This document shows positions 14,774-50,904 of a DNA stretch of 64,000 nucleotides, piece after piece. The stretch lies in sequence record PV764602.1. The stretch is one strand, 5' to 3'. Positions within the stretch are counted from its first letter, which is position 1; each line of letters begins with the position of its first letter. The notes below the pieces were generated by a model. That model had not been told where the DNA came from and did not search any database. It saw nothing but the letters and a program-made list of their open reading frames with translations. A program made the translations under genes and the position numbers.

Positions 14774-16171
<1,398 letters not shown>

Positions 16172-34775: not shown

Positions 34776-35306
34776 ATGACCAAAATTTCAGATATTTTAC
34801 CCGACGACGCAGTGACCGAAGTGGTGCGATCTGTTTTGCATCGCCTAGTGGTGGTCCGAGGCCTTTCCCTCTCCGAAATCATCAGGGACAACAGCGATAT
34901 TGATCCTGACCTGTTCGGGGCACGACTTTTCTCAGTGATCGCCAACACCGACGTGCAAATTCCTGCCTCACCGAAGGGGACCGAGGTAGCGACTCCAGAT
35001 TCAAGGGAGGACCGAGGGTACAAGAGGGGTGTGCGCGATTATGTCCTGTTCCGGCAGGACAAGAGAGGCAAGGGACGTCGGGAGTACCTGCACATCAGTG
35101 GGACTCTGTACGGGTGGCAGCAGTCCATACCCCAGGATGCGCTGACTCACTTTGAGAGCGTAGAGGCGGTCCAGAATCGGGTGAACGGGATGCGACTCGA
35201 TCCCGGCTACTTCTACTACACCGCTACCGCTGACGATCTGATAGATGAGGCGCTGCATAAGGTAGGGATAGTCCAGCATGCTATCGAGGTGCCGGATGAT
35301 GTTTAG
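34776..35306 (+). CDS. Hypothetical protein with KISDIL N-terminal module
   Basis: Start set at ATG 34776; N-terminus aligns with 42555 ORF. Confidence 0.6.
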   Translation: MTKISDILPDDAVTEVVRSVLHRLVVVRGLSLSEIIRDNSDIDPDLFGARLFSVIANTDVQIPASPKGTEVATPDSREDRGYKRGVRDYVLFRQDKRGKGRREYLHISGTLYGWQQSIPQDALTHFESVEAVQNRVNGMRLDPGYFYYTATADDLIDEALHKVGIVQHAIEVPDDV

Positions 35307-35421
35307 GATCAGCCCAGCCTTGTACGGGTTCTTCAAGGGGTGGACCGAGTTGGCTTCCGCTGTGGGAGTGAGGAAACGTGGGAAGAGTAAGTACACTAGG
35401 AAGAGGGGTAAGCGGAAATGA
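35296..35421 (+). CDS. 41-aa basic micro-protein ending RGKSKYTRKRGKRK (not in ORF track)
   Basis: Fills gap, ATGA-coupled to 35418; tail duplicated at 50734 ORF with synonymous changes. Confidence 0.75.
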   Translation: MMFRISPALYGFFKGWTELASAVGVRKRGKSKYTRKRGKRK

Positions 35422-35942
35422 AGTTGAGTGACATTCTGACTGAGCGGGATTTGATTGATCTGGCAGATGAGGTGTCGTCCGGGAACTACGAATCCCTGAT
35501 CGAGAAGCTGGGTGGGTATGAGTTTGAACCACCCTATACGATCGGGGTAGCAGTGGAGGCACACAAGCTTGCAACGTGCGCTACCGAGGATGATCCTCCC
35601 CTGATATGGGATAGCGTGTCGCCGGAGTCGATGCAGAAGCTAGGAGAAGGGCTGGCCGATAGTATGCACGCCCTGTCCATGCAGCCGGGTACCACGCGCA
35701 GGCTGCTAGGCAAGGCGGAGACAGACTGGAACCTACGAGAGGCCATGAATTTGGCTGAGGCTCAGGTGTTCCGTAGTATGTCAGCACTCAAGGCAGTACG
35801 GGTCGATGGGAATGGTGATCCCCTGCGAGGACCAGCATACGAGGCGGGCGAGTGGAGTCTGCGTAACTGGGAAGCAATCAAGCGTGACCAACAATCGTTC
35901 CCCGGATGGGGACTGCAAGGAGAACAAGATGCTCAAGATTGA
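35418..35942 (+). CDS. Hypothetical protein (MKLSDIL start)
   Basis: RBS GAGGGG, overlap chain. Confidence 0.6.
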   Translation: MKLSDILTERDLIDLADEVSSGNYESLIEKLGGYEFEPPYTIGVAVEAHKLATCATEDDPPLIWDSVSPESMQKLGEGLADSMHALSMQPGTTRRLLGKAETDWNLREAMNLAEAQVFRSMSALKAVRVDGNGDPLRGPAYEAGEWSLRNWEAIKRDQQSFPGWGLQGEQDAQD

Positions 35943-37569
35943 CTGTGACCGATACCACGAGGAAGTGGCCCCGCCGCTGACATTGGGTGGCATCATCGCA
36001 TGGGTGGAGCAGCAACCAGATGCCACTGTCTTCCATACCCTACACCATCCGCACAGCTACCGGGGCTACTACCAGTGTCTGGCCTTCGAGCCTGCGCCGG
36101 GCACCATGACCAAGGCTGAACTGCTTAGCCTCCTTCGGTCCTGCAACGGCGTGCCCTACGGTGGGTACAAGGGCGGGTTCTACTTCATGGGCCTCAACAC
36201 CGACTGCTTCCTCGCCAACTGGAGTGAGACGGGTTCGGCCATGAGCATGCCGTGGCTGGAGAACGAGCTTCGGGTACAGGAGGTAGAGGAGCCGGAGGGT
36301 ACAGCGCGCGCATCACGGGATGCCGTAGCCGATGTACAATCAGAGACAGCGGTGGAGGAAGCACGGGATGCGCGCGCTGTACCCGTAGACCCTGTGTCCA
36401 CCCATCATGTGCATCGGGGTGCAGAGTCTCTGCCCTGCTACTGCGCACGCACGACAGACCACCCGAATGGCCATGAGCTAATGTGGGAGAACCCAGCACC
36501 TCATGCTGCTGGCGCACCGTCGCCCTCTGCCCAAATGAAGATCGGTAGCCTGCCTGCTGATAGCATGGACCCTGTGGACCACCTTGAATCCCTGCCTCCC
36601 GATATGCGCCTAGGCTCTGCTGGCTACCTCGGTTATCTTGACTACCTCGACTACAGGGACAATCCGCCAATGACCACCAGTGATCCCAACGATTTGGTTG
36701 AACGTTGCAACAAGTACATGGCGCTGCGTGAGCGAGCCGAACAGGGCTTGCATGCGGTGGCGCGCGCTGCACAGGAAATGCGGGCGGTGTCTCAGCGTGG
36801 CAAAGACGCAGCCATTGTCCTGACCGAGACCCTCCCTTCTGAGCAGATGCGCGAGAGCATTCGGTCTACCGTTGCGTTCTTTGCTGCACAGGAGGAGCGC
36901 ATGACCGACATTCTCAACACCCTTGCCTCAGCGCGCGTCGATGCTTTGCAGGAGGGAGACTGTCGGAGGATTGATGGCCAGTGGTACGTCTGCACTGATC
37001 CCGACATGGCGCGCTTCGTTACCTTTGATGGGCTGGAGACTCCGTGCACCAACCTCAAGCGAGCGTATGATGCTCTTCGGTTCTACGTTGACGCCAGCGA
37101 CACTGAGTTGGAGGAACGTGGGATTGATCGTGCTGAGGCACTGCGTCTTGCCCGTGATGCTGAGCGCGCGCTGCACGAACACAACCACCTGAGCAAGGAC
37201 CCAGATGACGTGTGGTGGGCCGAACCCCTGCCGCTTACTGCTATCGACCACGGTGCTGTCGTTCCCCTTGATACCGAATGGCAGGTGACCACCAATCCGG
37301 TGCCTGCCGATGCTGATCTTGGTGGCGAGGATGGTCCCGTGTGGGCTGTGATGCTGCCGTTGTCCTTCGGGCCGAACGCCTACTACGATCCCTCGCCTCT
37401 GATCCAGCGTTTCAACCGAGGCTCCCACGTCCACTTCTTCCGTAAGGCTACGGCCACGAAGATCCGCGATCACTTCAACGCAATGGTGCGCACCAGCACT
37501 GAACAACCGTTGGCCGAGATCGTTCACCACACCCTACAGCGACACGTACCCGGAGACAACAATGCTTGA
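35929..37569 (+). CDS. Mosaic hypothetical protein
   Basis: RBS AGGAG + ATG 35929; N-terminal PHSYRGYY..LAFEP...GYKGG phage motif. Confidence 0.6.
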   Translation: MLKIDCDRYHEEVAPPLTLGGIIAWVEQQPDATVFHTLHHPHSYRGYYQCLAFEPAPGTMTKAELLSLLRSCNGVPYGGYKGGFYFMGLNTDCFLANWSETGSAMSMPWLENELRVQEVEEPEGTARASRDAVADVQSETAVEEARDARAVPVDPVSTHHVHRGAESLPCYCARTTDHPNGHELMWENPAPHAAGAPSPSAQMKIGSLPADSMDPVDHLESLPPDMRLGSAGYLGYLDYLDYRDNPPMTTSDPNDLVERCNKYMALRERAEQGLHAVARAAQEMRAVSQRGKDAAIVLTETLPSEQMRESIRSTVAFFAAQEERMTDILNTLASARVDALQEGDCRRIDGQWYVCTDPDMARFVTFDGLETPCTNLKRAYDALRFYVDASDTELEERGIDRAEALRLARDAERALHEHNHLSKDPDDVWWAEPLPLTAIDHGAVVPLDTEWQVTTNPVPADADLGGEDGPVWAVMLPLSFGPNAYYDPSPLIQRFNRGSHVHFFRKATATKIRDHFNAMVRTSTEQPLAEIVHHTLQRHVPGDNNA

Positions 37570-37936
37570 CCTTAGCAATGACGAACTGGCCAATGCCCTC
37601 AACAGCATCAACATGCAGAACTTCACTCTGTCCTCGGGCACAGAGGCGATGCAGGGTATCGCACGTGGACTCCGCGCTTTCAGTTCTACGCGTAGCGCCT
37701 TGCATGAAATGCACCTCACCACCGAAGCTCTGCATGCTGAGTGGACGAAGAAGCTGGAAGAGGCCAGCCATGAACAGCGCGCTCACGTACTGGCGATCCT
37801 GAGTTCCCTTGCACAACAGCGCGCGGGTCTGCACAAAGCGCTGACCACCATCACGCACGTCGAGGACATGATCCTCTCCATCGCCACTGAACTGACGGGC
37901 GTTACCTTCCCCGCGGAGGCCGCAGAATGGGTCTGA
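37562..37936 (+). CDS. Hypothetical helical protein
   Basis: RBS GGAG, overlap chain. Confidence 0.6.
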   Translation: MLDLSNDELANALNSINMQNFTLSSGTEAMQGIARGLRAFSSTRSALHEMHLTTEALHAEWTKKLEEASHEQRAHVLAILSSLAQQRAGLHKALTTITHVEDMILSIATELTGVTFPAEAAEWV

Positions 37937-38085
37937 GTGATTGCCCTAAGTGTTGGGACACGCCGTGTGGCTGCGGCCACCAGTACGAACAGTGGACAGA
38001 AGAACGTCTGCGTGACCACATCAAGATGCTGGAAATGGTGCTTGCCAAGAAGCAGGCGCAACGATACAAAGGAGAGTCCAAGTGA
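37927..38085 (+). CDS. 52-aa Cys-rich micro-protein MGLSDCPKCWDTPCGCGH... (not in ORF track)
   Basis: RBS GGAGG; CxxC..PCxCxH; couples to GTG 38082. Confidence 0.7.
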   Translation: MGLSDCPKCWDTPCGCGHQYEQWTEERLRDHIKMLEMVLAKKQAQRYKGESK

Positions 38086-38354
38086 GCATGTATCGAGTTG
38101 TGTTGCAGCCTGTATGCAGGGCGTTCGGCGGTTGGGTGAGCGACCCGGATCGTGTTGAGCGCAGTCACCTGATGAACACCACGGATACACTGGCGGTGTT
38201 GCAGTTTGACGACAACGGCGAATCCACCGGCAAAACGTTGTCCCAGACCTACCTGTTCCTGTGCCTCGGTGACATTGTGGAACTCCACGACGACCAAGGC
38301 AGCATCGGACACCACCGCGTACTGGACGTGATGGATGCGGAGGTAGCGCAATGA
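38082..38354 (+). CDS. Hypothetical protein
   Basis: RBS AGGAG; ends TGA, frame stays open to 38513. Confidence 0.6.
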   Translation: MSMYRVVLQPVCRAFGGWVSDPDRVERSHLMNTTDTLAVLQFDDNGESTGKTLSQTYLFLCLGDIVELHDDQGSIGHHRVLDVMDAEVAQ

Positions 38355-38513
38355 ACGTGGTACAACATCGGGAAGCTCAACCACCATGAAGGCGAGGTCA
38401 TCCTGCATCCCGGCACCAAGTACAAGGTATCGCACCACTCCCAGCACACTGATCCCGACAGCGGGCACATCTACCACGTGGTCCACCTGACCGCACACAG
38501 TCCGAAGCACTAA
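38355..38513 (+). pseudogene. Start-less C-terminal fragment of a His-rich ADP-ribosyltransferase (or readthrough extension)
   Basis: TWYNIGKLNHHEGEVILHPGTKYKV...HVVHL aligns to HEAETVLHHGNKFKV...HVTHVKL of the 40992 ART. Confidence 0.6.
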
Positions 38514-38517
38514 TCCG

Positions 38518-38553
38518 AAGGGCCTATCCTGCTAACGTGGGGTAGGCCCTTTT
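38518..38553 (+). terminator. Rho-independent terminator
   Basis: AAGGGCCTATC...GGTAGGCCCTT then TT. Confidence 0.75.
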
Positions 38554-38595
38554 GCATAGCCCAGCGATAGGTTCCAATTTCGTGCAAGTTGTCCC

Positions 38596-38632
38596 TGAAT
38601 CGAACCTGAACGGCAGCTGAACGAAAATGAAC
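38596..38632 (+). promoter_or_regulatory. Helically phased TGAA(C/T) direct repeats above the -35
   Basis: Starts at 38596, 38607, 38618, 38628. Confidence 0.55.
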
Positions 38633-38637
38633 AGTGG

Positions 38638-38666
38638 TTGACAGGGGGATAGGGTCCAGGCATAAT
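38638..38666 (+). promoter_or_regulatory. Sigma70-type promoter
   Basis: TTGACA-17 bp-CATAAT in a 235-bp intergenic region after a terminator. Confidence 0.8.
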
Positions 38667-38748
38667 AGGCTTGTGGTAGGGAAACAAGGGCGTCAGCCCA
38701 CCGGGACCCACCTATCGGAACCCCTAGTCAGATACCTCGGAGAATCTC

Positions 38749-39093
38749 ATGAAGCGCAAGTCCCCTCGGAACCGTCCCCTGATCGCTGAACTGATGCCGG
38801 TACGCGCTGCCGCCGAGCGCATGGACCTTCGGACCGCCAACCTGTCCAGCCACCTGATGACGGTGGAGTTCCCGGAGCAGGACGACTCCCAGGTTATCCT
38901 GACCTTCATGCTGAACAAGAATGCCCAGCTGGTGGCCTCGGTGGAACTGGAACGTGCGGGTCATGTGCAGTGCGCCACCCCTTACCTGCGCGGTGCCATG
39001 CTTCGGAACAGCCTGAGCGCCACGCTTGACGACTATGACGTGGAGCGCGACCGCATCGCCTCGGTCATCGCCTTCCTCGACAGCATCGTCTAA
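38749..39093 (+). CDS. Hypothetical (putative early) protein
   Basis: RBS GGAGA; first gene after the sigma70 promoter. Confidence 0.65.
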   Translation: MKRKSPRNRPLIAELMPVRAAAERMDLRTANLSSHLMTVEFPEQDDSQVILTFMLNKNAQLVASVELERAGHVQCATPYLRGAMLRNSLSATLDDYDVERDRIASVIAFLDSIV

Positions 39094-39110
39094 CCCTTCG
39101 GAGCCCCCTC

Positions 39111-39473
39111 ATGAACGCCAACGTCCTCGCCCTGATCGTACAGACCGCCGTTGAACTGGGACTGGTGGTCCAGCATACCGCCAACGACATTACTGTCCTG
39201 TTCGATGAATCGGAGATGGAAGCGGCAGGCATGTTGGTGCAAGCTGCTCCGGCCCTTCGATTTGTGTATGGCCCTGTCCTGACCGCCTACCCCGAAGCTC
39301 ACATGGGATACCACGAAGGGGAGTTGCAGGCCATCGGGTTCGCCACCAAGGGCGTTCGGGGCGACGAACTGCGCGACTGCATCGAAAAGATGAAGACCCA
39401 CTTCAAGCCCGAAGCCGTCATGCCCCTCTTTACCTTCCTCGGCCTGCTGAACCGCAACGCCGCCAACCACTAA
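39111..39473 (+). CDS. Hypothetical (putative early) protein
   Basis: RBS GGAG. Confidence 0.65.
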   Translation: MNANVLALIVQTAVELGLVVQHTANDITVLFDESEMEAAGMLVQAAPALRFVYGPVLTAYPEAHMGYHEGELQAIGFATKGVRGDELRDCIEKMKTHFKPEAVMPLFTFLGLLNRNAANH

Positions 39474-39483
39474 GGAACCGACC

Positions 39484-39603
39484 ATGAAGATCAAGACCAT
39501 CCTGCTGACCGCCGTTGCTATCTCGGCCATCCTTTGGGCCGTCGCCATGATTGGCAGCGCCCCGTTCGTCGGCCCCACCCTTTCCACCACCGTCCGCGCC
39601 TGA
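39484..39603 (+). CDS. 39-aa hydrophobic, signal-peptide-like micro-protein (not in ORF track)
   Basis: RBS TAAGGA; MKIKTILLTAVAISAILWAVAMIGSA. Confidence 0.65.
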   Translation: MKIKTILLTAVAISAILWAVAMIGSAPFVGPTLSTTVRA

Positions 39604-39623
39604 CCCAACCAGCACCCAAAGGA

Positions 39624-39917
39624 ATGACCATGAGCAAGTACCCCGCAATCGCCAACCTCGATCACGTCATCACTCAGACCGTCCAGTTCGGGCTGGATGA
39701 CTACGCGGGCCAGACGGATCACGTGCCCGAGGCCGTCGCCCACAGCATCGCCTACATCGCCAGCTGCTTGATGGCCCAGCACACCACCAATGGTTACCTC
39801 GGCGTGCCCACCGACGCCGCCCTGAACGCCCTGCAAATCACCACGGTCCACATGAGCTACGAAGACCGACTGGCGCTGACCCGCGCCTTCATTGCAGAAT
39901 ACGGCGGCGTCAAGTGA
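39624..39917 (+). CDS. Hypothetical (putative early) protein
   Basis: RBS AAAGGA. Confidence 0.65.
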   Translation: MTMSKYPAIANLDHVITQTVQFGLDDYAGQTDHVPEAVAHSIAYIASCLMAQHTTNGYLGVPTDAALNALQITTVHMSYEDRLALTRAFIAEYGGVK

Positions 39918-39976
39918 TCCGCATCCTCGCCCTGCTGATCGTCACCCTGTCCACCATCCTGACCTACCGGAACTAA
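39914..39976 (+). CDS. 20-aa hydrophobic micro-peptide MIRILALLIVTLSTILTYRN (not in ORF track)
   Basis: GTGA overlap; exactly fills the gap to ATG 39978. Confidence 0.45.
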   Translation: MIRILALLIVTLSTILTYRN

Positions 39977-39977
39977 C

Positions 39978-40310
39978 ATGAACGCCAAGACCAAGACCAC
40001 TTCGGACGTTGATGCACAGCGCGATGCCATGCAGAAAGCCGCCGCAGCCGAGCAGTTCCACCGCCACTCCCTGCTGCAAAGCATGACGGCCGACGGTCCC
40101 CTGTTCGTTCCTATGGACAAGGCCCACACCTTCGGTCTCGCTCCCGCTGGCCGTGGCGGTGCCGCCCACCTTGACGCGCTGGAATCCCTCGGCCTCATGG
40201 CTGCGCTGGTGCCCCACGCAACCAACCCGGACACATGGGGCGGCTACCTCGTCTGCCGGTCCAGCTGGGCACGCGAGCAAGTAGGTCCGGACGACGCCAA
40301 GTTCCTCTGA
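39978..40310 (+). CDS. Hypothetical (putative early) protein
   Basis: Co-directional chain. Confidence 0.6.
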   Translation: MNAKTKTTSDVDAQRDAMQKAAAAEQFHRHSLLQSMTADGPLFVPMDKAHTFGLAPAGRGGAAHLDALESLGLMAALVPHATNPDTWGGYLVCRSSWAREQVGPDDAKFL

Positions 40311-40338
40311 CCCACCCTGTAAACCTAGATTAGACCCT

Positions 40339-40357
40339 GCCGCCTTCGGGCGGCTTT
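40339..40357 (+). terminator. Terminator with UUCG tetraloop
   Basis: GCCGCC-TTCG-GGCGGC-TTT. Confidence 0.75.
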
Positions 40358-40391
40358 GTCGTGTCTGCCCTCCCGACCTAAAGGAACCATC

Positions 40392-40658
40392 ATGAACAAG
40401 CTCTCCGCATTCTTCTCCAACCTGATCGCCTCTTCCGCTACCGACATTGACGGGTTCTCCATCAAGGTCAAAGGTGAGCGCACGCTGGAACTACTGGATG
40501 AAGGCCGCGCCGCAGTGGCCGACCCTGAGTTCGTGCAGCGCCACGGCAACTACTGGCACTTCGTCGAACAGCAGCATCCCGAGTACCTGCTGGTCAGCAC
40601 GGGCCGACTGGTCATCGTCAAGGTACTCCCCGACAACGCCATCGACGCAGCCGCATGA
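40392..40658 (+). CDS. Hypothetical protein
   Basis: RBS AAAGGA before ATG 40392. Confidence 0.65.
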   Translation: MNKLSAFFSNLIASSATDIDGFSIKVKGERTLELLDEGRAAVADPEFVQRHGNYWHFVEQQHPEYLLVSTGRLVIVKVLPDNAIDAAA

Positions 40659-40906
40659 GTACCGACACCCCGTTGCCCAACGTCGAGGCCGTGACCCACA
40701 ACACCTTCGTGGTGCGCACGCAAGCAGGCTTCCGACATGCCCTCAAAGCATGGGGCGGTAAGGTAAAGGGCGACACGATTCACGACTGGCCCACCGCCTA
40801 TCCGAGTCTTGTCACGTTCACCGTCGGCTACTGCGGGTATCATTACGTGCAGTGTACTGCCATCCACCTCAACACACTGATGCCCGTAGTGGGCCGGCAC
40901 GCATAA
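40655..40906 (+). CDS. Hypothetical protein
   Basis: ATGA overlap. Confidence 0.6.
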   Translation: MSTDTPLPNVEAVTHNTFVVRTQAGFRHALKAWGGKVKGDTIHDWPTAYPSLVTFTVGYCGYHYVQCTAIHLNTLMPVVGRHA

Positions 40907-40991
40907 GGAAATCCCATGCCCGACGTTACCCTGCACCTGTGCATCATCTGAGTCCTCTAATTTCAGGTGTCTTCCCCTAAGCAGAGAAACC

Positions 40992-41780
40992 ATGAGAGTC
41001 CTGTCTACCGTAGGGTCCAACAAGTTCGTCTGGACCGATCATCACCTAGACTACACCGCACCCGAAGACGATTCGCTATCTAGTGAGACTGCTTCCTCCG
41101 AAGAACACGCTCATGCGTTGAAACGTACTTCCTTACATCCCGAAGACCAAAAAGGGCACAAGGCACACGTAACTCGGGCACGCCAAACATCCGAACACGT
41201 TGGCCATGCAGTAGATCACTACAGAAGTATCGGACACAACGATTTTAACCGAGAACTCCGCCATCCCTCCCACAAGGGTAAGATCAAAGGCAACGGTGAC
41301 TACAACTTCACCGACCATTCGCTACATGATCTGCATAAAGGATTGGGGCACGCTACCAGTTATCAGCTGAAACACAAGACCGCTGTGTACCGTGGGGTGG
41401 GCGAAGCCGCCCACAAGATCAAGGCGCTCAAGAAGGGAGACACCTTCACTGACCACGGGTACACCAGTACCAGCCATAGCCCCTCAGTAGCCATTTCTTC
41501 CTTCGGTCATAGCGAGCACACGGGTACGCATCGAGAGCATCACGTCGTCAAGATTCATTTGCCCAAAGGCTCCAAGATTATGCACGTACCTCACCACGTT
41601 GATGATGGCCTTACCCGGCATGAGGCAGAAACGGTGCTGCACCACGGTAACAAGTTCAAGGTCTTGGGTCACAGCGTCCACGATCTACCGGGTAGTCCGT
41701 CCGGACACTCTTCCTCATTCGATAGCACCAAGCACCGGGTGCACGTAACCCACGTCAAGCTAGTAAAGCAACGCAAATGA
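40992..41780 (+). CDS. His-rich ADP-ribosyltransferase (R-S-E clade, VIP2/Alt-like)
   Basis: VYRG, GYTSTS, HEAE(ExE)-TVL..G.KFKV; about 39 His in 262 aa. Confidence 0.85.
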   Translation: MRVLSTVGSNKFVWTDHHLDYTAPEDDSLSSETASSEEHAHALKRTSLHPEDQKGHKAHVTRARQTSEHVGHAVDHYRSIGHNDFNRELRHPSHKGKIKGNGDYNFTDHSLHDLHKGLGHATSYQLKHKTAVYRGVGEAAHKIKALKKGDTFTDHGYTSTSHSPSVAISSFGHSEHTGTHREHHVVKIHLPKGSKIMHVPHHVDDGLTRHEAETVLHHGNKFKVLGHSVHDLPGSPSGHSSSFDSTKHRVHVTHVKLVKQRK

Positions 41781-41787
41781 GCGACTC

Positions 41788-41810
41788 AGGCATCCGAAAG
41801 GGTGCCTTTG
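41788..41810 (+). terminator. Terminator with GNRA loop
   Basis: AGGCATCC-GAAA-GGGTGCCT-TTG. Confidence 0.7.
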
Positions 41811-41834
41811 TCGTTTCTGCGCTCCCGAGTCGAG

Positions 41835-41860
41835 GGTGCCATTTTGGCATCCTGTAAATA
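41835..41860 (+). promoter_or_regulatory. Palindromic operator fused to ATCCTGTAAATA box
   Basis: GGTGCCATTTTGGCATCCTGTAAATA. Confidence 0.8.
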
Positions 41861-41973
41861 TAGGGACAAAGGAGGCGCTATGCCCCTCAAAGAACGGGTC
41901 CAACGGGGTGGCCCTTTTATCCCCGACTTCGTAGACGTTCGCTACATCACCCATAGCCCAACAAGGAAGCCCC

Positions 41974-42558: not shown

Positions 42559-43069
42559 AGATATCCGAACTGCTGGACGAAGACACCATATCCGAACTGG
42601 TCACTTCGATCTTCCGCATCCGACTGGACTCCGGCCGCAGCGTAGGTGCCGTACTGACCCTCAACTACCCGGCCGGTCACGTGCGTGCTCTGCTAACCAA
42701 CGCGATCAACGAAACCGAAGTGTATGGAGAGGTCTCGACCTCCGTATCTACGGGTAGTGACCAACCTGATCCGCTGCTGGCTGCACTAGGAGGCAACAGG
42801 CAGACCTACCACTTCCTGACAGGCAAGTATCCCGAGGAAGACGTGGAAGACGTGGCGGCAATGGCCCGACGCTGGCAATGGCTGTGCATCAACCGACCGA
42901 CCCTGCTCATCACTGGCATCTTCGGGAACGGCTGCACAAACAAAACCATCGATGACGTGGAAATCATCATCGACCGCGCCGACGATCGGGGCCTGCTGCC
43001 AGTGCGCTTCCCTCCAACTGAGGACTGCCACGTGGGACCGAACTGCATCTGCCAACACAAGGACCAGTA

Positions 43070-43070
<1 letters not shown>
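42555..43070 (+). CDS. Hypothetical protein with KISELL N-terminal module
   Basis: ATGA overlap; aligns with 34776 ORF. Confidence 0.6.
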
Positions 43071-43851
<781 letters not shown>

Positions 43852-43855
<4 letters not shown>

Positions 43856-44037
43856 ACCTGGACGCACTCAGCATTCTCTTCATCGTGGTATTCGTCCTGC
43901 TGTCGTTTGTGTTCCTGTGGCTGGGACGTGGTGCATGGCGTGGTCGTGCACGTACCGGCATCACTCCTGTCTTCGCCAGCGCCTTTGGTTTCGGTGCCTG
44001 CTACACTGGCATCTTCCTTCTACTGGAAAGGCTATGA
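43852..44037 (+). CDS. Small two-TM membrane protein
   Basis: Two hydrophobic segments. Confidence 0.55.
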
Positions 44038-44300
44038 CCAACAAGACCTTCAACATCAAGACCGAGTTCTTCACCAAGCTGTGCATCTACCTCATGGTAG
44101 GTGGCCTAGTTACTGGTGTGATCGAACGCCAGTACGCCAAGGAGTGCCCCGGTGAGGCCGGTGGCATGTTGACCATCACCGAAGCTGGGATCGTCAGCGC
44201 CACGTGGCCTGCGTTGCTAGGCGCTACGGTGTTCCATCTACTGACCAAAGATGGGGCCGACCGTCCCACCCAATGCAAGAGCGCCCGAGGTGATCTATGA
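44034..44300 (+). CDS. Small membrane protein
   Basis: ATGA overlap; hydrophobic segments. Confidence 0.55.
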   Translation: MTNKTFNIKTEFFTKLCIYLMVGGLVTGVIERQYAKECPGEAGGMLTITEAGIVSATWPALLGATVFHLLTKDGADRPTQCKSARGDL

Positions 44301-44563
44301 CCTTCGATCTGACCATCCAACCAATCTCGGGTTGGAGCGAAGAAAGGAACTGCTGGCTGCACCCGCCTAGCTTCGCCAAGGTGTACGAAGTCGGGATCGA
44401 TCCCGACCACCTGTTGCTGCGTGTGGTTCCCCACCGTCACAGCCATAGCGTCAGCTACCTGAGCGTCAAGGCCCAACACTTGGCGGTCAACGACGTGGTA
44501 GTGTGGCCGTTCCCTACCGGCGAGCAGTTCGGGATCATCCACCACGTACCGAGTGTGCTCTGA
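44297..44563 (+). CDS. Hypothetical protein
   Basis: RBS GAGGTG. Confidence 0.6.
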   Translation: MTFDLTIQPISGWSEERNCWLHPPSFAKVYEVGIDPDHLLLRVVPHRHSHSVSYLSVKAQHLAVNDVVVWPFPTGEQFGIIHHVPSVL

Positions 44564-44694
44564 TGGAAGAAGCCGTCAGCATGTTATACACCCACGTAGA
44601 CTGTCCGTATTGTGACAACACCTTTGAGGTCGAAGGCGATCAACGAGGTTCCGTAGTCACGTGCGATCATTGTGATAAGGAAATGTTGGTATGA
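44563..44694 (+). CDS. Zinc-ribbon micro-protein
   Basis: CPYC...CDHC; TGATG coupling. Confidence 0.65.
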   Translation: MEEAVSMLYTHVDCPYCDNTFEVEGDQRGSVVTCDHCDKEMLV

Positions 44695-44736
44695 CCAACC
44701 ACGAACAAGCAATCACCGACGCACTGTGGAGAGACA

Positions 44737-45255
44737 ATGGACACAATTGACCTGAGCAAACCCACACGTGTGGTCACTGGGACCGTGACTATGCCTGCAC
44801 CTGCCTTCCAGCAGATTCCGAAGGCCAACACGTACACTCGACTGTACACCCCAGCTGAAACCCTCAGTGACATGGGCCAAGAGTTTGACGCGGCGTTGCA
44901 TGCTGCGATCCAACCAGTGCTCACCCACTTTATTGAGCGTGGAGCCGACAGTCACGACATGGAAGCGTTGGCCGTCGCTATGGTGACCAGCGAAATTGCC
45001 AGTCTGCGCATGGCCCGGCAGCTGCGCCGCCGCAACGAAGAACGCGAGGCAGAGCGATTGCAGTTGGAGACCGACATTTTGCAGTATGGGGATCGTGCCT
45101 ACGAACTGTGGTGCGAACACCAGCACAACGCAGTCAAGCGAGAGAACCGCCCTGCTTACTGGAGTCAGCTGCATCCACAACACAAAGCCGCGTGGGTCAT
45201 CCGGGCCAAGCGTGAGGCAGAACAGGCAGAGTGTAGGGAGGCCCACGATGAATGA
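44737..45255 (+). CDS. Hypothetical protein
   Basis: RBS GGAGA. Confidence 0.6.
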   Translation: MDTIDLSKPTRVVTGTVTMPAPAFQQIPKANTYTRLYTPAETLSDMGQEFDAALHAAIQPVLTHFIERGADSHDMEALAVAMVTSEIASLRMARQLRRRNEEREAERLQLETDILQYGDRAYELWCEHQHNAVKRENRPAYWSQLHPQHKAAWVIRAKREAEQAECREAHDE

Positions 45256-45403
45256 TTGTCCGCTGTGCAAAGCAACTCGACCCAGCTGCCCATACGGTCC
45301 CGTGGTGGCCACCGACGTAAAGACCGGCAAGAAGGTGTGGCTGTCTAGCACGTTGGTCCAGAAGATCACGAAGCTGCTGCCCAACAAGGAGGCTACCGCA
45401 TGA
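45248..45403 (+). CDS. Small Cys-containing protein
   Basis: RBS GGAGG; CPLC...CPYG. Confidence 0.5.
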   Translation: MNDCPLCKATRPSCPYGPVVATDVKTGKKVWLSSTLVQKITKLLPNKEATA

Positions 45404-45798
45404 CCGTCAAGCTCACAGGATGGACCAAGGCCGATGGGCACACGTTGTGGATGACACAAGATGGCGAACCTGTGTTCCGTGAAGGCCACCTGCCTGACCT
45501 CGGCCCCAACAAAGCTGTGCATCTTACGGGCAAGATGCCAGTGGACGATCCTCGCTACCTCAAATACCCAGGTTACGAATACCTTGAGGCCATCAGCGAC
45601 GATCAAACCCAGTACCTGATCGAGCCCAAGCGCAACACTCGCCTGCGGATACGTAGGAGCCCGACGTTGGTAGGTGGGTGGACTATGGACATCCGGTCGT
45701 ATGGTGAATGGGTTGTCTACCTTCCAGACGGTAGCAGCAAGACCATGATCCAAGATACGCTCGACAAAATCATTCGCTACGGTCCGGTGGGCGAATGA
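45400..45798 (+). CDS. Hypothetical protein
   Basis: RBS GGAGG, ATGA overlap. Confidence 0.6.
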   Translation: MTVKLTGWTKADGHTLWMTQDGEPVFREGHLPDLGPNKAVHLTGKMPVDDPRYLKYPGYEYLEAISDDQTQYLIEPKRNTRLRIRRSPTLVGGWTMDIRSYGEWVVYLPDGSSKTMIQDTLDKIIRYGPVGE

Positions 45799-46574
45799 GG
45801 ATTTTAGCCAAGTACGGCACCGGGAGTTCAGCTGTCTACATTGCAGTGGATGAGAGCACTCCCGATGTTGAGTACATCGTAACCTGCGCCATAGAGCTAC
45901 AGATTGGTCAGCAAGTTGAGGCGTCCAGTTGTTCGCTGCACACAGGGGTGCACACGCACCTTCCGTCTTACCTGTCGTTCCCATACCTGTACTCAGCCAT
46001 GTCCGGTTTGTGGATGCTGTGCCGCCGTCAAAGCAATAGGCGTGCGCTGGTGCTGGGTTTAGGTGGCGGCAATGCCTCGCGTTACATTCGCTACACGTGG
46101 CCCGATGTAGCCCTAGTGTCTGTTGAAGCCAGTCCCGAAATGATCGCGGTGGCAAAGCTGTGGCCTGACGTCGGACCAGTCATTAAGGGCGATGCAGTGC
46201 AAGTGGTCAAGCGTACCGAAGCTGGGTACCTTGATTTCGTGCTGGTGGATTGCTACCCCTTCGAGAACAATGCGATTGGCCAGCAGTTCTTTTCAACCGA
46301 GTTCCTGCGGGAGCTACGTAGTGTGTTGACCGACGACGGGATCGTGGCTTTCAACTTCATTGATGACGTGCCTCCGCTACGGGTAGCGGAGGTTGGGTTC
46401 AACGGCGGTGTGTTGGTGCGAAGCCCTGCGCGGTTACGGGAATCAAACAAGGTGGTGATGCTGACCAAGGCGCCGCTTGATCCCAACGAGTTTGTTACCG
46501 AGTGTCATTCATCCAACCCAGCTTACGCACTGTCGCGGCAGCTGACTGACTTTACCTTTGAGGCATACCCATGA
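45795..46574 (+). CDS. Spermidine-synthase-like class I SAM-dependent methyltransferase
   Basis: LVLGLGGG, VSVEASPEMIAVAK, GDA, DFVLVDCY, FFSTEFL..LRSVL..DG...FN. Confidence 0.8.
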   Translation: MRILAKYGTGSSAVYIAVDESTPDVEYIVTCAIELQIGQQVEASSCSLHTGVHTHLPSYLSFPYLYSAMSGLWMLCRRQSNRRALVLGLGGGNASRYIRYTWPDVALVSVEASPEMIAVAKLWPDVGPVIKGDAVQVVKRTEAGYLDFVLVDCYPFENNAIGQQFFSTEFLRELRSVLTDDGIVAFNFIDDVPPLRVAEVGFNGGVLVRSPARLRESNKVVMLTKAPLDPNEFVTECHSSNPAYALSRQLTDFTFEAYP

Positions 46575-46984
46575 AAATCATTTTGCAAATCCGGTGGCCC
46601 AGCGATGCTCCCGCCACAGATGCAGCAGACGTTCCCCGTATCACCGACCGCTTGTTCAATCTCACGCGTCCGATTCTGGAAGAGTACGACGCAGGCAACT
46701 ACAATCTGGATGACGTGATGACTGCGCTGGAGAACGCAGGGTTCCTCAACCCGAGTCCCTACCGTCGCGCCGGTGTTGTCTCGCTCATCTGCCCAGCCCA
46801 CGCTTACGAAGGTGCGGCCGATCTTGTCAGTACGGTCATGAGGAGCATTGCTGAGGGTGATGAGAGTGCAATCATTGTGTTCACCAATCCGGACATTCGC
46901 ATTGGTGCAGAGGTTGGCATGTTCGTGGCTGGTCCTCAGTTCACACTGCTCAACGTGAGCTTCGACCCCAGCAAGTTCCTGTAA
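46571..46984 (+). CDS. Hypothetical protein
   Basis: RBS GAGG, ATGA overlap. Confidence 0.6.
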   Translation: MKIILQIRWPSDAPATDAADVPRITDRLFNLTRPILEEYDAGNYNLDDVMTALENAGFLNPSPYRRAGVVSLICPAHAYEGAADLVSTVMRSIAEGDESAIIVFTNPDIRIGAEVGMFVAGPQFTLLNVSFDPSKFL

Positions 46985-46999
46985 CCAAGGAGACCGACG

Positions 47000-47326
47000 A
47001 TGACTTGCCACTGTGGATCGTATTCGTGTATGGACTGCATCTGTCCAGATACCTGCGGTCTATGCGACCGAAAGTGGCACAAGTGCCAGTGTAGCACAGA
47101 GCCGCGTGAGTACGAGTTGGAGAACGGCCGCAAGTACCGAGCGGTCTACACCAAGACGCCGTTTATCGACGGCGAGTATCCGAAGGGCGGCATCGTCGTG
47201 CACGTGTGGAGCACCGAATGGTGCTACCTTGCCAACTGCGAATCGTGGGAGGCAGTGGACGAAATGATGCGGTCGCTGAAACGGCTGCCCGAACGCAAGG
47301 AGAGAAATGATGGGCAAATGGATTGA
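47000..47326 (+). CDS. Cys-rich hypothetical protein
   Basis: RBS AGGAG; nine N-terminal Cys. Confidence 0.6.
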   Translation: MTCHCGSYSCMDCICPDTCGLCDRKWHKCQCSTEPREYELENGRKYRAVYTKTPFIDGEYPKGGIVVHVWSTEWCYLANCESWEAVDEMMRSLKRLPERKERNDGQMD

Positions 47327-47636
47327 CAAGATGCAGGTAGTGCATGGCACGACCATAGCCGAGTACAAAGCAATCTTGCTAGAGCGGGTACGCCACCCTT
47401 CCAAGATGTACCGAGACTTGGGATGCAAGCCTGTTGTCAAGCCTATCTACCTGTACGAACTGACCGACGGTACGATTTTGAACACAGGGTATTATCCATT
47501 GTGCCGTTCGCTACGCACCATGCTGGGTGCCTCGATCAAGAGCGAGGAATTTTGGTACGGCGACCCGAGTGTAACGCCGCTCCTGTTCGCGCATGGAGCA
47601 ATCGTCTTTCCTCAACGTGTGGAGAAGACCGCATGA
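47307..47636 (+). CDS. Hypothetical protein
   Basis: RBS AGGAG. Confidence 0.55.
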   Translation: MMGKWIDKMQVVHGTTIAEYKAILLERVRHPSKMYRDLGCKPVVKPIYLYELTDGTILNTGYYPLCRSLRTMLGASIKSEEFWYGDPSVTPLLFAHGAIVFPQRVEKTA

Positions 47637-48043
47637 ATGGTACTGGCCTTGGCCCTCCACGTCCACGCGTGGTGACACTGTCCGAGTTGTACGGTAAGCC
47701 CTACCCTTTGATTCTTTCGATAGATCGCCTCCTTGAGGGCAACCACTTACCGATGAGTAAGCCCCTCAGTAGAGACGAAATCCTCAACACCGATTGGACC
47801 CTCGTAGTTCAAACCTCTGCGCTGATTGCGTTCGGTCCAGAGGATATGGTAGCTGAGTTTGAACGTGCTAGGACCGAGGTCAAGCGTCCGCTGCACCCAC
47901 GCACGTTCAAGAAGAACCGACTGGTAGAAGGTGTTTCCCTAGAGGGCACCTTCCTGATCCAAGGGCCTTTGAGTGGATACGCTCCCGGTGACAACGTATG
48001 GCAACTCAGCGTTGATTACGCCGTTAACAGGAATCGAAAATGA
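47633..48043 (+). CDS. Hypothetical protein
   Basis: ATGA overlap at 47633. Confidence 0.55.
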   Translation: MNGTGLGPPRPRVVTLSELYGKPYPLILSIDRLLEGNHLPMSKPLSRDEILNTDWTLVVQTSALIAFGPEDMVAEFERARTEVKRPLHPRTFKKNRLVEGVSLEGTFLIQGPLSGYAPGDNVWQLSVDYAVNRNRK

Positions 48044-48390
48044 CACACATTGTCGCACCGAAGCCGCAGGAACACTGGCTCAAAGAACAGACCACCAAGT
48101 TCCGTCCCCTCTACAACAAGCGCACCAAGTTTGGTTCGGGAGGCAAGAGGACGTTGCTCGAAGAGTGGTGGACGGTTGAGAACACCGACCACGTTGTAGT
48201 GGATGATGACGGCAAACCCGTCCGTTTCCACTTCCTTCCGATGGCACAAATCTGCGCCGACTCTGTGAACGGTCCTACCGTTTCCCAGCAAGAGCAGACG
48301 CGCCAGATTCTACAGGACGTGGTGGACCGAAAGATCGACAACAACAAAGCAGTGGCTTTGCTGTTTGCAGTCTATGGGATTGACCTATGA
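48040..48390 (+). CDS. Hypothetical protein
   Basis: ATGA overlap. Confidence 0.6.
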   Translation: MTHIVAPKPQEHWLKEQTTKFRPLYNKRTKFGSGGKRTLLEEWWTVENTDHVVVDDDGKPVRFHFLPMAQICADSVNGPTVSQQEQTRQILQDVVDRKIDNNKAVALLFAVYGIDL

Positions 48391-48632
48391 AGAAGCTACT
48401 TAGGATCGTAGATGATTGGTGGTTGTTCATCGGCCGTGCTGCCATAGTGGTGTGCGTTACGTTCGTTGTCGGCATGATTGTATGGATCAACGTGCTTACG
48501 ATCAAGTCCAATCGTCACGCTAAAGAATGGTGCCCTCGACACAACGGCGTGCTGATCGAAGCAGGTTCCGGTAACGTCAAGTGCGTCAAGAGCATCGAAT
48601 ACTTCACCGAAGAGGAACTCAAGGCGCCATGA
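48387..48632 (+). CDS. Single-pass membrane protein
   Basis: AAIVVCVTFVVGMIVWINVL. Confidence 0.6.
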   Translation: MKKLLRIVDDWWLFIGRAAIVVCVTFVVGMIVWINVLTIKSNRHAKEWCPRHNGVLIEAGSGNVKCVKSIEYFTEEELKAP

Positions 48633-48931
48633 TGCACATTGTAGATTCGGGAGCTTTCACGATGGCGCTCAATGTACTGCGCCGTGCAGGTAAGACCGAA
48701 GTAGCTGACGAGCTAGAGAAGGCCAGCAGGACGCTGCACCCACGTGACCTCGCCGAGGCAATGGATCATGTGCTACAGAACAAGACCGAAGACGTGATGG
48801 ACGGCGGCTACTACGAATCGCCCAACACTTCGTTAGGCGATGATGCACTGGAACAAATGACCACTGTGATCGACGGCAATCTCTGCTTGGTTCCGTTTGC
48901 TGGTCGCGTGCTCAACTCAATCAAACCATAA
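48629..48931 (+). CDS. Hypothetical protein
   Basis: ATGA overlap. Confidence 0.55.
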   Translation: MMHIVDSGAFTMALNVLRRAGKTEVADELEKASRTLHPRDLAEAMDHVLQNKTEDVMDGGYYESPNTSLGDDALEQMTTVIDGNLCLVPFAGRVLNSIKP

Positions 48932-48941
48932 GGAAAGACTC

Positions 48942-49262
48942 ATGCCATACTCTACCCGTAATCGTGGCCTCTACATCATCATCGCGCTGCTCACGGGCAT
49001 GCTGGGGTTCCACAACTTCTACGCAGGACATTTGAAGAAGGGTGGCCTCCAGTTCTTGGCCACCGTGGTCAGCATCCTGATTATCCCCGTGACTGCCATG
49101 CTGTCTGTCCTGATTTCTGGCGGTGACAACGGCGGTGAGGCGTCCAAGCTGGTGATGTTCGCTGTGGTTGCTGCTCCTGTGCTGGCAGTGTGCAATGCAA
49201 TCAGCGTGATCCTGGACATCGTTGAAACCAAGTCTGACGGCTATGGCGATTTGATGCGTTGA
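48942..49262 (+). CDS. TM2-domain membrane protein
   Basis: IALLTGMLGFHNFYAGH.KKG.LQ; RBS AAGGA. Confidence 0.8.
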   Translation: MPYSTRNRGLYIIIALLTGMLGFHNFYAGHLKKGGLQFLATVVSILIIPVTAMLSVLISGGDNGGEASKLVMFAVVAAPVLAVCNAISVILDIVETKSDGYGDLMR

Positions 49263-49293
49263 AGAAAAGGCCCCAATTGGGGCCTTTTCTTTT
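49262..49293. terminator. Perfect 30-bp palindrome, probable bidirectional terminator
   Basis: AAGAAAAGGCCCCAATTGGGGCCTTTTCTT then TT. Confidence 0.85.
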
Positions 49294-49310
49294 GCCGGAA
49301 ATAATGAGAG

Positions 49311-49337
49311 GTTGCCAAAATGGCAATCCTGTAAATA
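49311..49337 (+). promoter_or_regulatory. Palindromic operator fused to ATCCTGTAAATA box
   Basis: GTTGCCAAAATGGCAATCCTGTAAATA. Confidence 0.8.
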
Positions 49338-49357
49338 TAGGATACAAGGAGGACGAT

Positions 49358-49750
49358 ATGATCCCAGACTTTGACCTGTCCAAAGCAGTGCGCCAAACCA
49401 AGTTCGTGGGCCCCAACTCGAAGACAGGTAACTGCACTGAGGCGGCTATTGCCACCCTGCTGCAAATTCCCCTAAGCGCCGTTCCCGAATTCAACCGTAG
49501 CGGAGACGACGCATCTGACTTTTGGGAGAGCGTTGAAAGCTTCTTGGTTGAGCACGGGCTCTACATCAAGTACACCACCAAGCACAAACAGGGTGTGTAT
49601 CTCGTAAGCGGTCCCACGGTAAGAGGCCGAGGGCATCACACTGTCATCTACAAGGATGGACAGTTGGCGTGGGACCCGCATCCCTCCGACGCAGGCGTCA
49701 CCGAAGACGTGTGGTGCCTACACCTTCAAGACACGGATCCATACGCATGA
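49358..49750 (+). CDS. Papain-like (C39-like) cysteine peptidase fold protein
   Basis: GNCTEAAIA (Cys), HHTV (His), WDP (Asp); RBS AGGAGG. Confidence 0.6.
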   Translation: MIPDFDLSKAVRQTKFVGPNSKTGNCTEAAIATLLQIPLSAVPEFNRSGDDASDFWESVESFLVEHGLYIKYTTKHKQGVYLVSGPTVRGRGHHTVIYKDGQLAWDPHPSDAGVTEDVWCLHLQDTDPYA

Positions 49751-50097
49751 GTACCGATTGGAGTAAAGCAATGGTTATTGACTGGGAACTGCTCGCCCTT
49801 CGTATGCTTGCAGCCAACCAACTTGGCATCCGCATTGAACAAAGCGACGGTCATCGTTGGATCATCGAAGACCTGTGTTCCGAATTCTGCCTGCATCTGT
49901 TCGGGGAGCCGGTGCCATTCAAGGTGGTGGACCCTGAGCGTGAAGCCTACCAAAAGGTATACGGTTCCTACCGTGCTGCCCTCGACCTGATTGACGAACG
50001 GTTAGTTGCCAAGGGACACAAGACATTGGCCGAACAGTTCGATCACATCAACTACCACAACGACCTGTCAAACATCTTCGGAGACGGCGTGCAATGA
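49747..50097 (+). CDS. Hypothetical protein
   Basis: ATGA overlap. Confidence 0.55.
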   Translation: MSTDWSKAMVIDWELLALRMLAANQLGIRIEQSDGHRWIIEDLCSEFCLHLFGEPVPFKVVDPEREAYQKVYGSYRAALDLIDERLVAKGHKTLAEQFDHINYHNDLSNIFGDGVQ

Positions 50098-50420
50098 TTT
50101 TCAATGAGGATGAACTCAACCGAATAGCCGATCAGCTTGTGGGCAAGACCGCTGAGATTTGGGATGCACGTACGATACGCGAAGTAGCCCGAATAGGCGA
50201 AGTTCCCTTCTACCTGAAAGGCACCGTGGAGCAAATGACTGTAAGCGCTCACGTAGGCAACATTGTCGCACGTGACGAACAGGACCAACCCATCTACCTG
50301 ACGATCAAGGGCTGCATTTGCTGGGAGGGTCGATACACTCTGCGCGCCGACCTGAACTACGAACCGTACATGGGCTCTGTGGGAGCCGTCCCTGTTGACA
50401 TTGAATGGAACCAACCATGA
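50094..50420 (+). CDS. Hypothetical protein
   Basis: ATGA overlap. Confidence 0.6.
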   Translation: MIFNEDELNRIADQLVGKTAEIWDARTIREVARIGEVPFYLKGTVEQMTVSAHVGNIVARDEQDQPIYLTIKGCICWEGRYTLRADLNYEPYMGSVGAVPVDIEWNQP

Positions 50421-50734
50421 GCAAGATCAAATTCCCGCAGGGCATGCGGGCCTATCGTCCACCGATGCACGCACCCCGACACGCCGTTACGGCACTGACC
50501 CTCGACGTTGAGGAATTCATTGCATTCCTACGCGAGCAGAAGTCCGACGTGGTACGCCTCAACGTGTTGGCATCCAAGGGCTCGGGTCATCATTACGTCT
50601 GTGTCAACGAGTGGCGACCGGGCAACCCTGTGCAGGAAGAGGCACGTGCGAAGCGTGCGCCTAAGCCGCAGCCGGATCATCATGATTACGAGGATCACAG
50701 CGTTCCACTCAATGACGAGGATATTCCTTTCTGA
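50417..50734 (+). CDS. Small SSB-like protein ending in the SSB-Ct motif DEDIPF
   Basis: Acidic tail ...NDEDIPF matches the bacterial SSB tail DDDIPF. Confidence 0.65.
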   Translation: MSKIKFPQGMRAYRPPMHAPRHAVTALTLDVEEFIAFLREQKSDVVRLNVLASKGSGHHYVCVNEWRPGNPVQEEARAKRAPKPQPDHHDYEDHSVPLNDEDIPF

Positions 50735-50904
50735 TGCTAGGACCTACTGATACCATCACAGAGTTCCCTGTGCCACGGCCCCGAACGTATCCCTCTGATG
50801 GAATGTTTACATGGGAAGGGCATCGCATCCACACTCACAGCAAGCCCGAGCCGCGCAGGCGGGGCAAGAGTAAGTACACCCGAAAGAAGGGGAAGCGCAA
50901 ATGA
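50734..50904 (+). CDS. 56-aa micro-protein ending RGKSKYTRKKGKRK (not in ORF track)
   Basis: TGATG-coupled upstream, ATGA-coupled downstream; same tail as 35296 ORF. Confidence 0.75.
   Translation: MLGPTDTITEFPVPRPRTYPSDGMFTWEGHRIHTHSKPEPRRRGKSKYTRKKGKRK

Follow-up and report, generated by a model that had tools for sequence, protein, structure and literature searches.

Why should a jumbo phage end two otherwise unrelated micro-proteins in the same short basic peptide? The question arises from a stretch of 64,000 nucleotides (the window), which matches bases 1–64000 of Xanthomonas phage PhiXhv-15 (PV764602.1, 228,725 bp) with 100% identity. PhiXhv-15, recovered from sewage, is a virulent jumbo phage that infects Xanthomonas hortorum pv. 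vitians; with PhiXhv-12 and PhiXhv-16, it has been assigned to a new genus without known relatives (PMC13340338). On the plus strand of the window lie two small open reading frames (ORFs): ORF1 (35296–35421), which encodes a micro-protein of 41 amino acids, or 40 from a conserved second ATG at 35299, and ORF2 (50734–50904), which encodes one of 56 amino acids. Both ORFs, and the tails in which they end, are found where a preliminary description of this DNA had placed them and read as it reported. Their comparison shows, from sequence alone, a 16-residue linear motif that purifying selection strongly maintains and that recurs on two heads without relationship to one another.

Two Unrelated Heads on a Common Tail

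The C-termini of both products conform to the sequence R[KR]RGKSKYTRK[RK]GKRK. Tail copy 1 occupies 35371–35418 on the plus strand (RKRGKSKYTRKRGKRK, 16 amino acids, charge about +11), and copy 2 occupies 50854–50901 on the same strand (RRRGKSKYTRKKGKRK, 16 amino acids). The common stretch had been given as 14 residues; it is real but extends over 16, of which 14 are identical in the two copies, the two differences being a K/R and an R/K exchange. Within the shorter stretch, the six synonymous codon differences and the one R/K change reported earlier are present, and across all 16 codons there are 12 nucleotide differences, eight of them in third positions (binomial p=0.019). Compared within the one genome, the copies show a proportion of synonymous differences (pS) of 0.86, which is effectively saturated, and a proportion of non-synonymous differences (pN) of 0.08. 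The longest exact DNA identity between them is 14 nucleotides, and similarity between the two loci ends abruptly at both tail borders. A degenerate 45-nucleotide pattern of the tail finds exactly two matches in the window against none in 100 shuffles, and no third copy turns up when the other 165 kb of the PhiXhv-15 genome are scanned in all six frames. The genome thus carries two copies only, either old paralogous segments or the products of convergence; in both cases the peptide is what is maintained.

The N-terminal parts show no significant likeness (shuffle p 0.2–0.9), which agrees with the earlier claim that they are unrelated; an aromatic motif seen in both heads in a MAFFT alignment is not significant. 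The ORF1 product has an isoelectric point (pI) of 11.75 and a net charge of +11.5, nearly all of it within the tail, and a single-sequence AlphaFold2 (AF2) model predicts a helix at residues 7–29 followed by a coil tail, with a predicted local distance difference test (pLDDT) score of 71. The predicted helix is moderately hydrophobic, but the highest Kyte-Doolittle mean over 19 residues is 0.69 and no transmembrane segment is present. The ORF2 product (pI 11.0, net charge +9.8) likewise holds nearly all of its charge in the tail. Its head is hydrophilic, proline-rich, and predicted to be disordered, its AF2 model, again from the single sequence, is coil throughout (pLDDT 66), and with a highest Kyte-Doolittle mean of −0.51 over 19 residues it also has no transmembrane segment of the sort that marks holin-like or type I toxin-like membrane micro-proteins.

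Selection on the Tail Peptide

Is it the peptide or the DNA that is conserved? ORF1 was compared at 13 loci and ORF2 at 11, drawn from five phage records and from metagenome-derived Logan contigs. Besides the PhiXhv phages, the collection includes Ep026 and Ep032, unverified records about 97% identical to them. The tail is kept in the ORF1 and ORF2 loci of all of these sources, as expected for a tail conserved in relatives. The copy 1 peptide is invariant in the 12 loci that can be read through the whole tail, despite three DNA haplotypes in which serine is encoded by AGT or TCC; at the 13th locus the contig end cuts the tail and the last 14 residues are present. Copy 2 occurs as two DNA haplotypes over its 11 loci and shows a single R/K change, in PhiXhv-16. 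Over the five haplotypes, DNA variation touches 12 of the 16 codons of the tail, with two R/K exchanges as the only changes in the peptide. In the PhiXhv-12 lineage all three bases of the serine codon differ (AGT to TCC), a switch that requires an intermediate codon not encoding serine if the bases were not altered several at a time. Because the tail DNA varies while the peptide admits only R/K exchanges, the comparison shows, at the level of sequence, that selection acts on the tail peptide rather than on the DNA, as the preliminary description had proposed, and that the ORFs are coding. By the same evidence, the basic residues of the tail and its G, S, Y, T, and G appear to be held by purifying selection, and ORF1 and ORF2 are to be regarded as real, translated genes.

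The rest of each gene is constrained as well, though judging by the substitutions constraint is strongest in the tails of the micro-proteins. Between PhiXhv-15 and PhiXhv-12, ORF1 shows six synonymous and three non-synonymous codon changes, and all three of the latter fall in the N-terminal head. Between PhiXhv-15 and PhiXhv-16, ORF2 shows 13 nucleotide differences, 11 of them in third positions (p=2e-4), which correspond to 11 synonymous and two non-synonymous codons; the first 40 codons, which form the head, contain seven synonymous changes against one non-synonymous change. A 3-nucleotide indel in ORF1 of Ep026 and Ep032 is in frame. The start common to all relatives of ORF1 is the second ATG (35299), since the first reads AAG in Ep026 and Ep032, and a Shine-Dalgarno sequence, GAGG, lies at 35286–35289.

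The opposite explanation is that no peptide function exists and that the tails are a DNA or RNA repeat (a ribosome-binding-site region or a recombination linker) or a chance match between spurious ORFs. It is true that the purine-rich 3' end serves the next gene as its Shine-Dalgarno sequence, and ORF2 is uncalled in most annotations. However, no shuffle reproduced the tail pattern, the differences are concentrated at synonymous sites, serine switches codon family, and exact DNA identity is short. Nor is there a sign of a structured RNA: the region around ORF1 is less structured than its shuffles (z +2.4), that around ORF2 shows no excess structure over them (z +1.0), and Rfam matches no family at either region. 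Promoter and terminator scans gave matches at chance level only. A repeat without peptide function is therefore barely credible.

Both genes had been described as unannotated. For ORF1 this does not hold, as it is deposited in GenBank as a hypothetical protein (XYR93026.1). ORF2 is indeed unannotated in PhiXhv-15, yet it is annotated in PhiXhv-16 (XYR93392.1), and only there: it is absent from the annotation of four of the five deposited genomes, two of which carry no annotation at all, and is uncalled in all five Logan contigs that cover it. Phage micro-proteins are mostly invisible to annotation, and ORF2 is an example. The pair offers a good test case for detecting functional micro-ORFs by setting synonymous against non-synonymous change in paralogous segments.

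Restriction to One Phage Genus

In all collections searched, the sequence comparisons show ORF1, ORF2, and the tail to be confined to one phage genus. A word-indexed search with each ORF against 5.8 billion proteins gave zero matches, and a profile built from both ORFs, run against 1.84 billion representatives, returned only two spurious repeat proteins devoid of a basic tail. Searches of 50,697 phage records with tblastn found only the five near-identical phages, for the two ORFs and for the neighboring genes alike. Back-translated tail patterns found no related matches in IMG/VR, JGI metagenomes, or GTDB genomes; two IMG/VR matches to a shorter tail pattern are due to chance. The neighboring proteins likewise have no relatives in IMG/VR or metagenomes, and when ten of them were compared with Pfam and PHROGs, all were orphans except for one match to a PHROG of unknown function.

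Profile searches at E<=10 gave the same picture. PHROGs yielded no family for ORF1 or ORF2, and hmmscan against Pfam and NCBIfam yielded no ArfA or S12 model for either; within this threshold, HMMER filters already discard most matches from about 0.1 upward. The profile comparison with ArfA and phage families, of the kind suggested earlier as a check, gave no match.

The two unverified records are of interest in their own right. Ep026 (OQ603353.1) and Ep032 (OQ603359.1) are marked 'UNVERIFIED', come from Israel, and list Xanthomonas sp. Q and Erwinia sp. YA1 as hosts. Their identity of about 97% stands against the statement in the description of the PhiXhv phages that these have no database relatives.

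A Proposed Basic Arm for Nucleic Acid

What could such a tail do? The explanation that we favor, and in which our confidence is evenly balanced, is that ORF1 and ORF2 encode accessory micro-proteins with a disordered polycationic arm that would bind nucleic acid and take two heads to the same target. Each protein would combine an unrelated short N-terminal head, predicted to be a single helix in ORF1 and a proline-rich disordered stretch in ORF2, with the common 16-residue polycationic tail of about +11. Extended and intrinsically disordered, the tail would run as an arm along RNA or DNA as its polyanionic partner, with its lysines and arginines on the backbone, its glycines permitting close approach, and its tyrosine free for stacking, and would thereby carry each head to the same nucleic-acid-containing target. 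We infer both the binding of nucleic acid by the tail and any particular target, whether the 30S subunit or DNA.

Several points weigh against this explanation. Polybasic tails can also bind acidic proteins, membranes, and polyphosphate, and strict conservation of the non-basic tail residues would fit a protein partner equally well. Neither ORF has significant similarity to characterized nucleic-acid-binding families in Pfam, PHROGs, NCBIfam, the PDB, or the profile searches. The AF2 models of both, being single-sequence predictions with pLDDT 66–71, carry little information. Finally, the description of the PhiXhv phages reports neither transcript data nor virion mass spectrometry (PMC13340338).

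Basic tails that bind nucleic acid are already known; this motif and its use on two heads are new, and the phage genus that carries it was described only recently. Should the target prove to be DNA or an acidic partner, the tail would constitute a new short linear motif; should it prove to be the ribosome, the pair would add a viral member to the few small factors that read the mRNA channel. In either case, the tail provides a small, chemically synthesizable object for asking what jumbo phages target early in infection.

Comparison with ArfA and uS12

Two specific candidates can be named within the nucleic-acid-arm explanation, the ribosome and DNA. As a ribosome binder, the tail would thread into the empty mRNA entry channel or a 16S rRNA groove of the host 30S subunit, and the heads would provide rescue, blockage, or takeover. 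The preliminary description had called the tail ArfA-like and raised ribosome rescue, hibernation, or translational takeover as possibilities, and residues 31–48 of ArfA (alternative ribosome-rescue factor A), including the conserved KGKGS motif, do occupy the mRNA tunnel (PMC5378476, PMC6299226). The ArfA used for comparison was that of E. coli K-12 (b4550), fetched by accession, and the uS12 scored below is likewise an E. coli protein. In single-pair BLASTP, both tails align with ArfA residues 32–42, within the tunnel-bound stretch, with six of 11 residues identical (E=0.036 for ORF1 and 0.012 for ORF2) and with the same K[KR]GKxxYxRK spacing. This part of the claim stands, but when the tails are shuffled with their composition preserved, 5.6% and 14% of the shuffles score equally well against ArfA (p=0.056 and 0.14), so that the likeness is not distinguishable from what composition alone produces. 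The ORF2 tail can also be aligned to ArfA residues 2–12 (11 residues, E=0.64).

The remainder of ArfA offers no further likeness. BLASTP gives no credible alignment of ORF1 or ORF2 to it outside the tail, and its conserved hydrophobic, RF2-contacting N-terminal region is matched by neither head. Five PDB searches at E<=10, made with each ORF, with each 24-residue tail segment, and with a two-sequence profile, never returned an ArfA chain. Membership in the ArfA family is not supported by these sequence comparisons.

In general architecture, ArfA, ArfT, and BrfA resemble the phage pair in being very small (40 amino acids for ArfT, 52–55 for mature ArfA) and in having a basic C-terminal tail, which in these factors lies in a nucleic-acid channel. 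ORF1 in particular has the layout of ArfA and ArfT, hydrophobic toward the N-terminus and basic toward the C-terminus, as well as the size of ArfT. In contrast to ArfA, the micro-proteins are phage-encoded and exist in two copies with different heads, and the mRNA regions of ORF1 and ORF2 show no unusual structure, unlike that of ArfA with its RNase III-dependent control.

A second ribosomal resemblance comes from uS12. In a comparison with the 68 proteins of one 50 kb E. coli region, where ribosomal proteins abound, the best match was the uS12 C-terminal tail, with scores of 37 and 31 for the ORF1 and ORF2 tails compared with 34 and 31 for ArfA. The shuffle p-values, 0.004 and 0.041, fail correction for the 68 comparisons. 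The uS12 tails are also the only tail-centered matches in the PDB, accounting for four of seven hits at E 0.55–4.7. Like the phage tail, uS12 ends in a basic extreme C-terminus, R-x-x-x-[KR]-S-K-Y-x-x-K-[KR]-x-K, eight of whose 14 residues are identical to ORF1. The resemblance is limited to the last 14–17 residues, Pfam finds no S12/S23 domain, and uS12 has 124 amino acids as against 41–56.

In favor of a ribosome binder, the basic C-terminal tails of ArfA, ArfT, BrfA, and uS12 work on rRNA or the mRNA channel, uS12 supplies the best tail match in the 68-protein set and in the PDB, and rescue factors of this type arose several times without sequence similarity. Against a ribosome binder stand the compositional explanation of the ArfA match, the loss of the uS12 p-values on correction, the missing ArfA and S12 profiles and ArfA structures, and an ORF2 head that is neither hydrophobic nor ArfA-like, the two heads having nothing in common with the RF2-binding region. 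These considerations make a ribosome binder unlikely. In a narrower form of this candidate, the phage would have evolved the tail as a plug that fits a groove in the small subunit of its host, be it the empty mRNA channel in which ArfA, ArfT, and BrfA act or the place on rRNA where the tail of uS12 lies, with two heads mounted on the same plug; this we consider distinctly unlikely. If true, it would reveal a virus-encoded modular family of ribosome-targeting micro-proteins without sequence relatives. As matters stand, the motif is an orphan short linear motif with a clean selection signal, an easy object for study, and its link to ArfA is not established.

Comparison with DNA-Binding Arms

The second candidate within the nucleic-acid-arm explanation is a DNA binder or charge neutralizer, whose tail would lie in a DNA groove or offset phosphate charge so as to coat or condense phage or host DNA, perhaps being packaged with it. 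Microvirus J protein and protamine-like proteins coat or condense DNA in this way and are packaged with the genome. J is a small, basic DNA-binding and packaging protein of 25–40 amino acids, with one hydrophobic or aromatic segment and one basic segment. ORF1 and ORF2 resemble J-type proteins in size and basicity, but the order of the segments is reversed, neither gene lies in a structural module, and PHROGs gives no match.

The extreme positive charge and predicted disorder of the micro-proteins suit this role. Furthermore, the best single-sequence PDB match of ORF1 is the YPWM motif and N-terminal arm of Ultrabithorax (Ubx; E=0.3). In the Ubx homeodomain structures (PDB 1b8i, 4cyc), a basic R-[RK]-R-G-[RK]-x-x-Y-T-R stretch follows an aromatic motif, as in ORF1, and binds the DNA minor groove. 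At E=0.3–0.44, however, this match is non-significant, it is not seen for ORF2 in the PDB, and the Ubx arm belongs to a eukaryotic fold that is not present in the phage proteins. The spermidine-synthase-like gene between the two ORFs hints that charge neutralization matters to the phage, and several of its larger proteins have lysine-rich C-terminal tails. On the other side, PHROGs yields no phage DNA-binding or J-like family, plain charge neutralization needs no invariant S, Y, and T, and the genes sit among small orphans rather than with structural genes. A DNA target is doubtful. The three look-alikes of the tail, ArfA, uS12, and Ubx, are all non-significant, and all share extended basic arms that lie on RNA or DNA.

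Gene Order and Natural Variation

The surroundings of the two genes bear on alternatives outside nucleic-acid binding. ORF1 and ORF2 belong to a long array that runs along the plus strand at about 33–53 kb, consists of small orphan genes, and is flanked by a replication/recombination block and a nucleotide-metabolism block. The array includes an ADP-ribosyltransferase-like gene, which is consistent with a host-takeover region. The stop codon of ORF1 overlaps the start ATG of the next gene (35418–35942, plus strand), which encodes a strongly acidic protein of 174 amino acids (pI 4.45, charge −15). ORF2 is translationally coupled to the gene upstream (50417–50734, plus strand, 105 amino acids), whose TGA overlaps its ATG in the sequence TGATG, and its own stop codon overlaps the start of the downstream gene (50901–51101, plus strand; 66 amino acids, pI 9.15). 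Compared pairwise, the two upstream genes show no similarity, nor do the two downstream genes. A programmed frameshift fusion to the upstream genes is ruled out, as the relative frames are +1 and −1 and the short overlaps contain no slippery site.

ORF1 is dispensable in one natural variant. A metagenomic Logan contig of 4.3 kb (SRR12874582_23848, here L014), whose bases 1076–1210 correspond to window positions 35296–35421, contains no ORF1; since it does without the gene, ORF1 is dispensable in nature. The junction coincides with a microhomology, AATGA, and here the upstream and downstream genes are coupled straight to each other. The place of the acidic 174-amino-acid gene is taken by an allele of 130 amino acids that is 39% identical, and the flanks are conserved, with 85% identity in the upstream gene and 94% in the large downstream gene.

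One consequence concerns a cis-acting leader. In such a mechanism, the last 16 codons would act in the exit tunnel at termination, slow release, and tune re-initiation downstream, and the free peptide would have no role. What is conserved corresponds precisely to the 16 residues that precede the stop codon, and this codon overlaps the next ATG; the heads are unrelated, and selection operates on amino acids, as in known arrest peptides. The AAATGA overlap emphasized in the preliminary description is real at both ORFs, but it is ordinary for this array: of the 47 junctions between genes in the 33–53 kb region, 19 have a four-nucleotide stop/start overlap of the ATGA type. In addition, the head of ORF2 shows purifying selection of its own, the genes that follow the two ORFs have no relationship to each other, and L014, which lacks ORF1, couples the downstream gene straight to the upstream one. 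A leader function is therefore highly improbable.

The same variant bears on a protein-partner tag, in which the tail would be a short linear motif for an acidic phage or host protein, such as the 174-amino-acid product, a protease, or a chaperone, and the micro-proteins would serve as adaptors, inhibitors, or members of a neutralized pair. ORF1 and the acidic gene co-vary in L014, so that ORF1 may travel with its acidic neighbor, and the co-variation makes the 174-amino-acid protein a possible partner of the ORF1 product. The 105-amino-acid protein upstream of ORF2 also has an acidic C-terminal tip, ...NDEDIPF, which we take to resemble the protein-docking C-terminal tip of bacterial SSB, and the invariant non-basic residues of the tail suit specific protein recognition. 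However, the gene downstream of ORF2 encodes a basic protein, so the pairing is not common to both loci; the co-variation rests on a single 4.3 kb metagenomic contig; and no known motif or family is matched. A protein-partner tag is accordingly very unlikely.

The locus of ORF2 has its own variation. Residues 1–71 of the 105-amino-acid protein are identical in PhiXhv-16; its C-terminus has diverged and the acidic tip is not kept. The ORF2 changes fall in this same patch, in which the C-terminus of the upstream protein is altered at many residues. In PhiXhv-16 the locally divergent patch runs from the last part of the upstream gene through ORF2 into the beginning of the downstream gene, and an additional 89-amino-acid gene (17331–17600 of L003, the PhiXhv-16 sequence) follows the gene that corresponds to the 66-amino-acid gene downstream of ORF2. 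Both micro-ORFs are located at mosaic junctions.

Further downstream of ORF1, an annotated coding sequence for 587 amino acids (35806–37569, plus strand) overlaps the preceding gene by 137 nucleotides. Some of its metagenomic relatives, on the Logan contigs L014, L015, and L017, are called at 541 amino acids, and the L014 alignment begins at residue 42. For these reasons the true start is probably an internal methionine near 35929.

Other Genes of the Window

Several further genes merit mention. The product of 8849–9844 (plus strand), annotated as a 'CRISPR/Cas system associated protein', matches the PD-(D/E)XK nuclease family PF12705 (E=5e-6) and, from this match, would be a Cas4/RecB-like nuclease and not a sign of a CRISPR system. 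Two large hypothetical proteins, encoded at 11630–13336 and 14774–16171 (both plus strand), have long lysine-rich C-terminal tails, with nine to ten K/R among the last 16 residues; Pfam has no match for either. They flank an annotated sigma-factor gene (13734–14750), a small gene (13333–13737) intervening after the first.

Two other genes of note lie between the micro-ORFs. The gene at 45795–46574 (plus strand) is spermidine/spermine-synthase-like, with a PF01564 match just above the cutoff (E=5.7e-5); it is labeled 'hypothetical' in PhiXhv-15 and polyamine aminopropyltransferase in PhiXhv-12 and PhiXhv-16. Finally, the 'hypothetical protein' of 262 amino acids encoded at 40992–41780 (plus strand) matches the ADP-ribosyltransferase exoenzyme family PF03496 (E=2e-8; 34.2 bits, cutoff 23.4) and is probably a host-modifying enzyme, an ADP-ribosyltransferase of the kind represented by Alt and Mod of phage T4.

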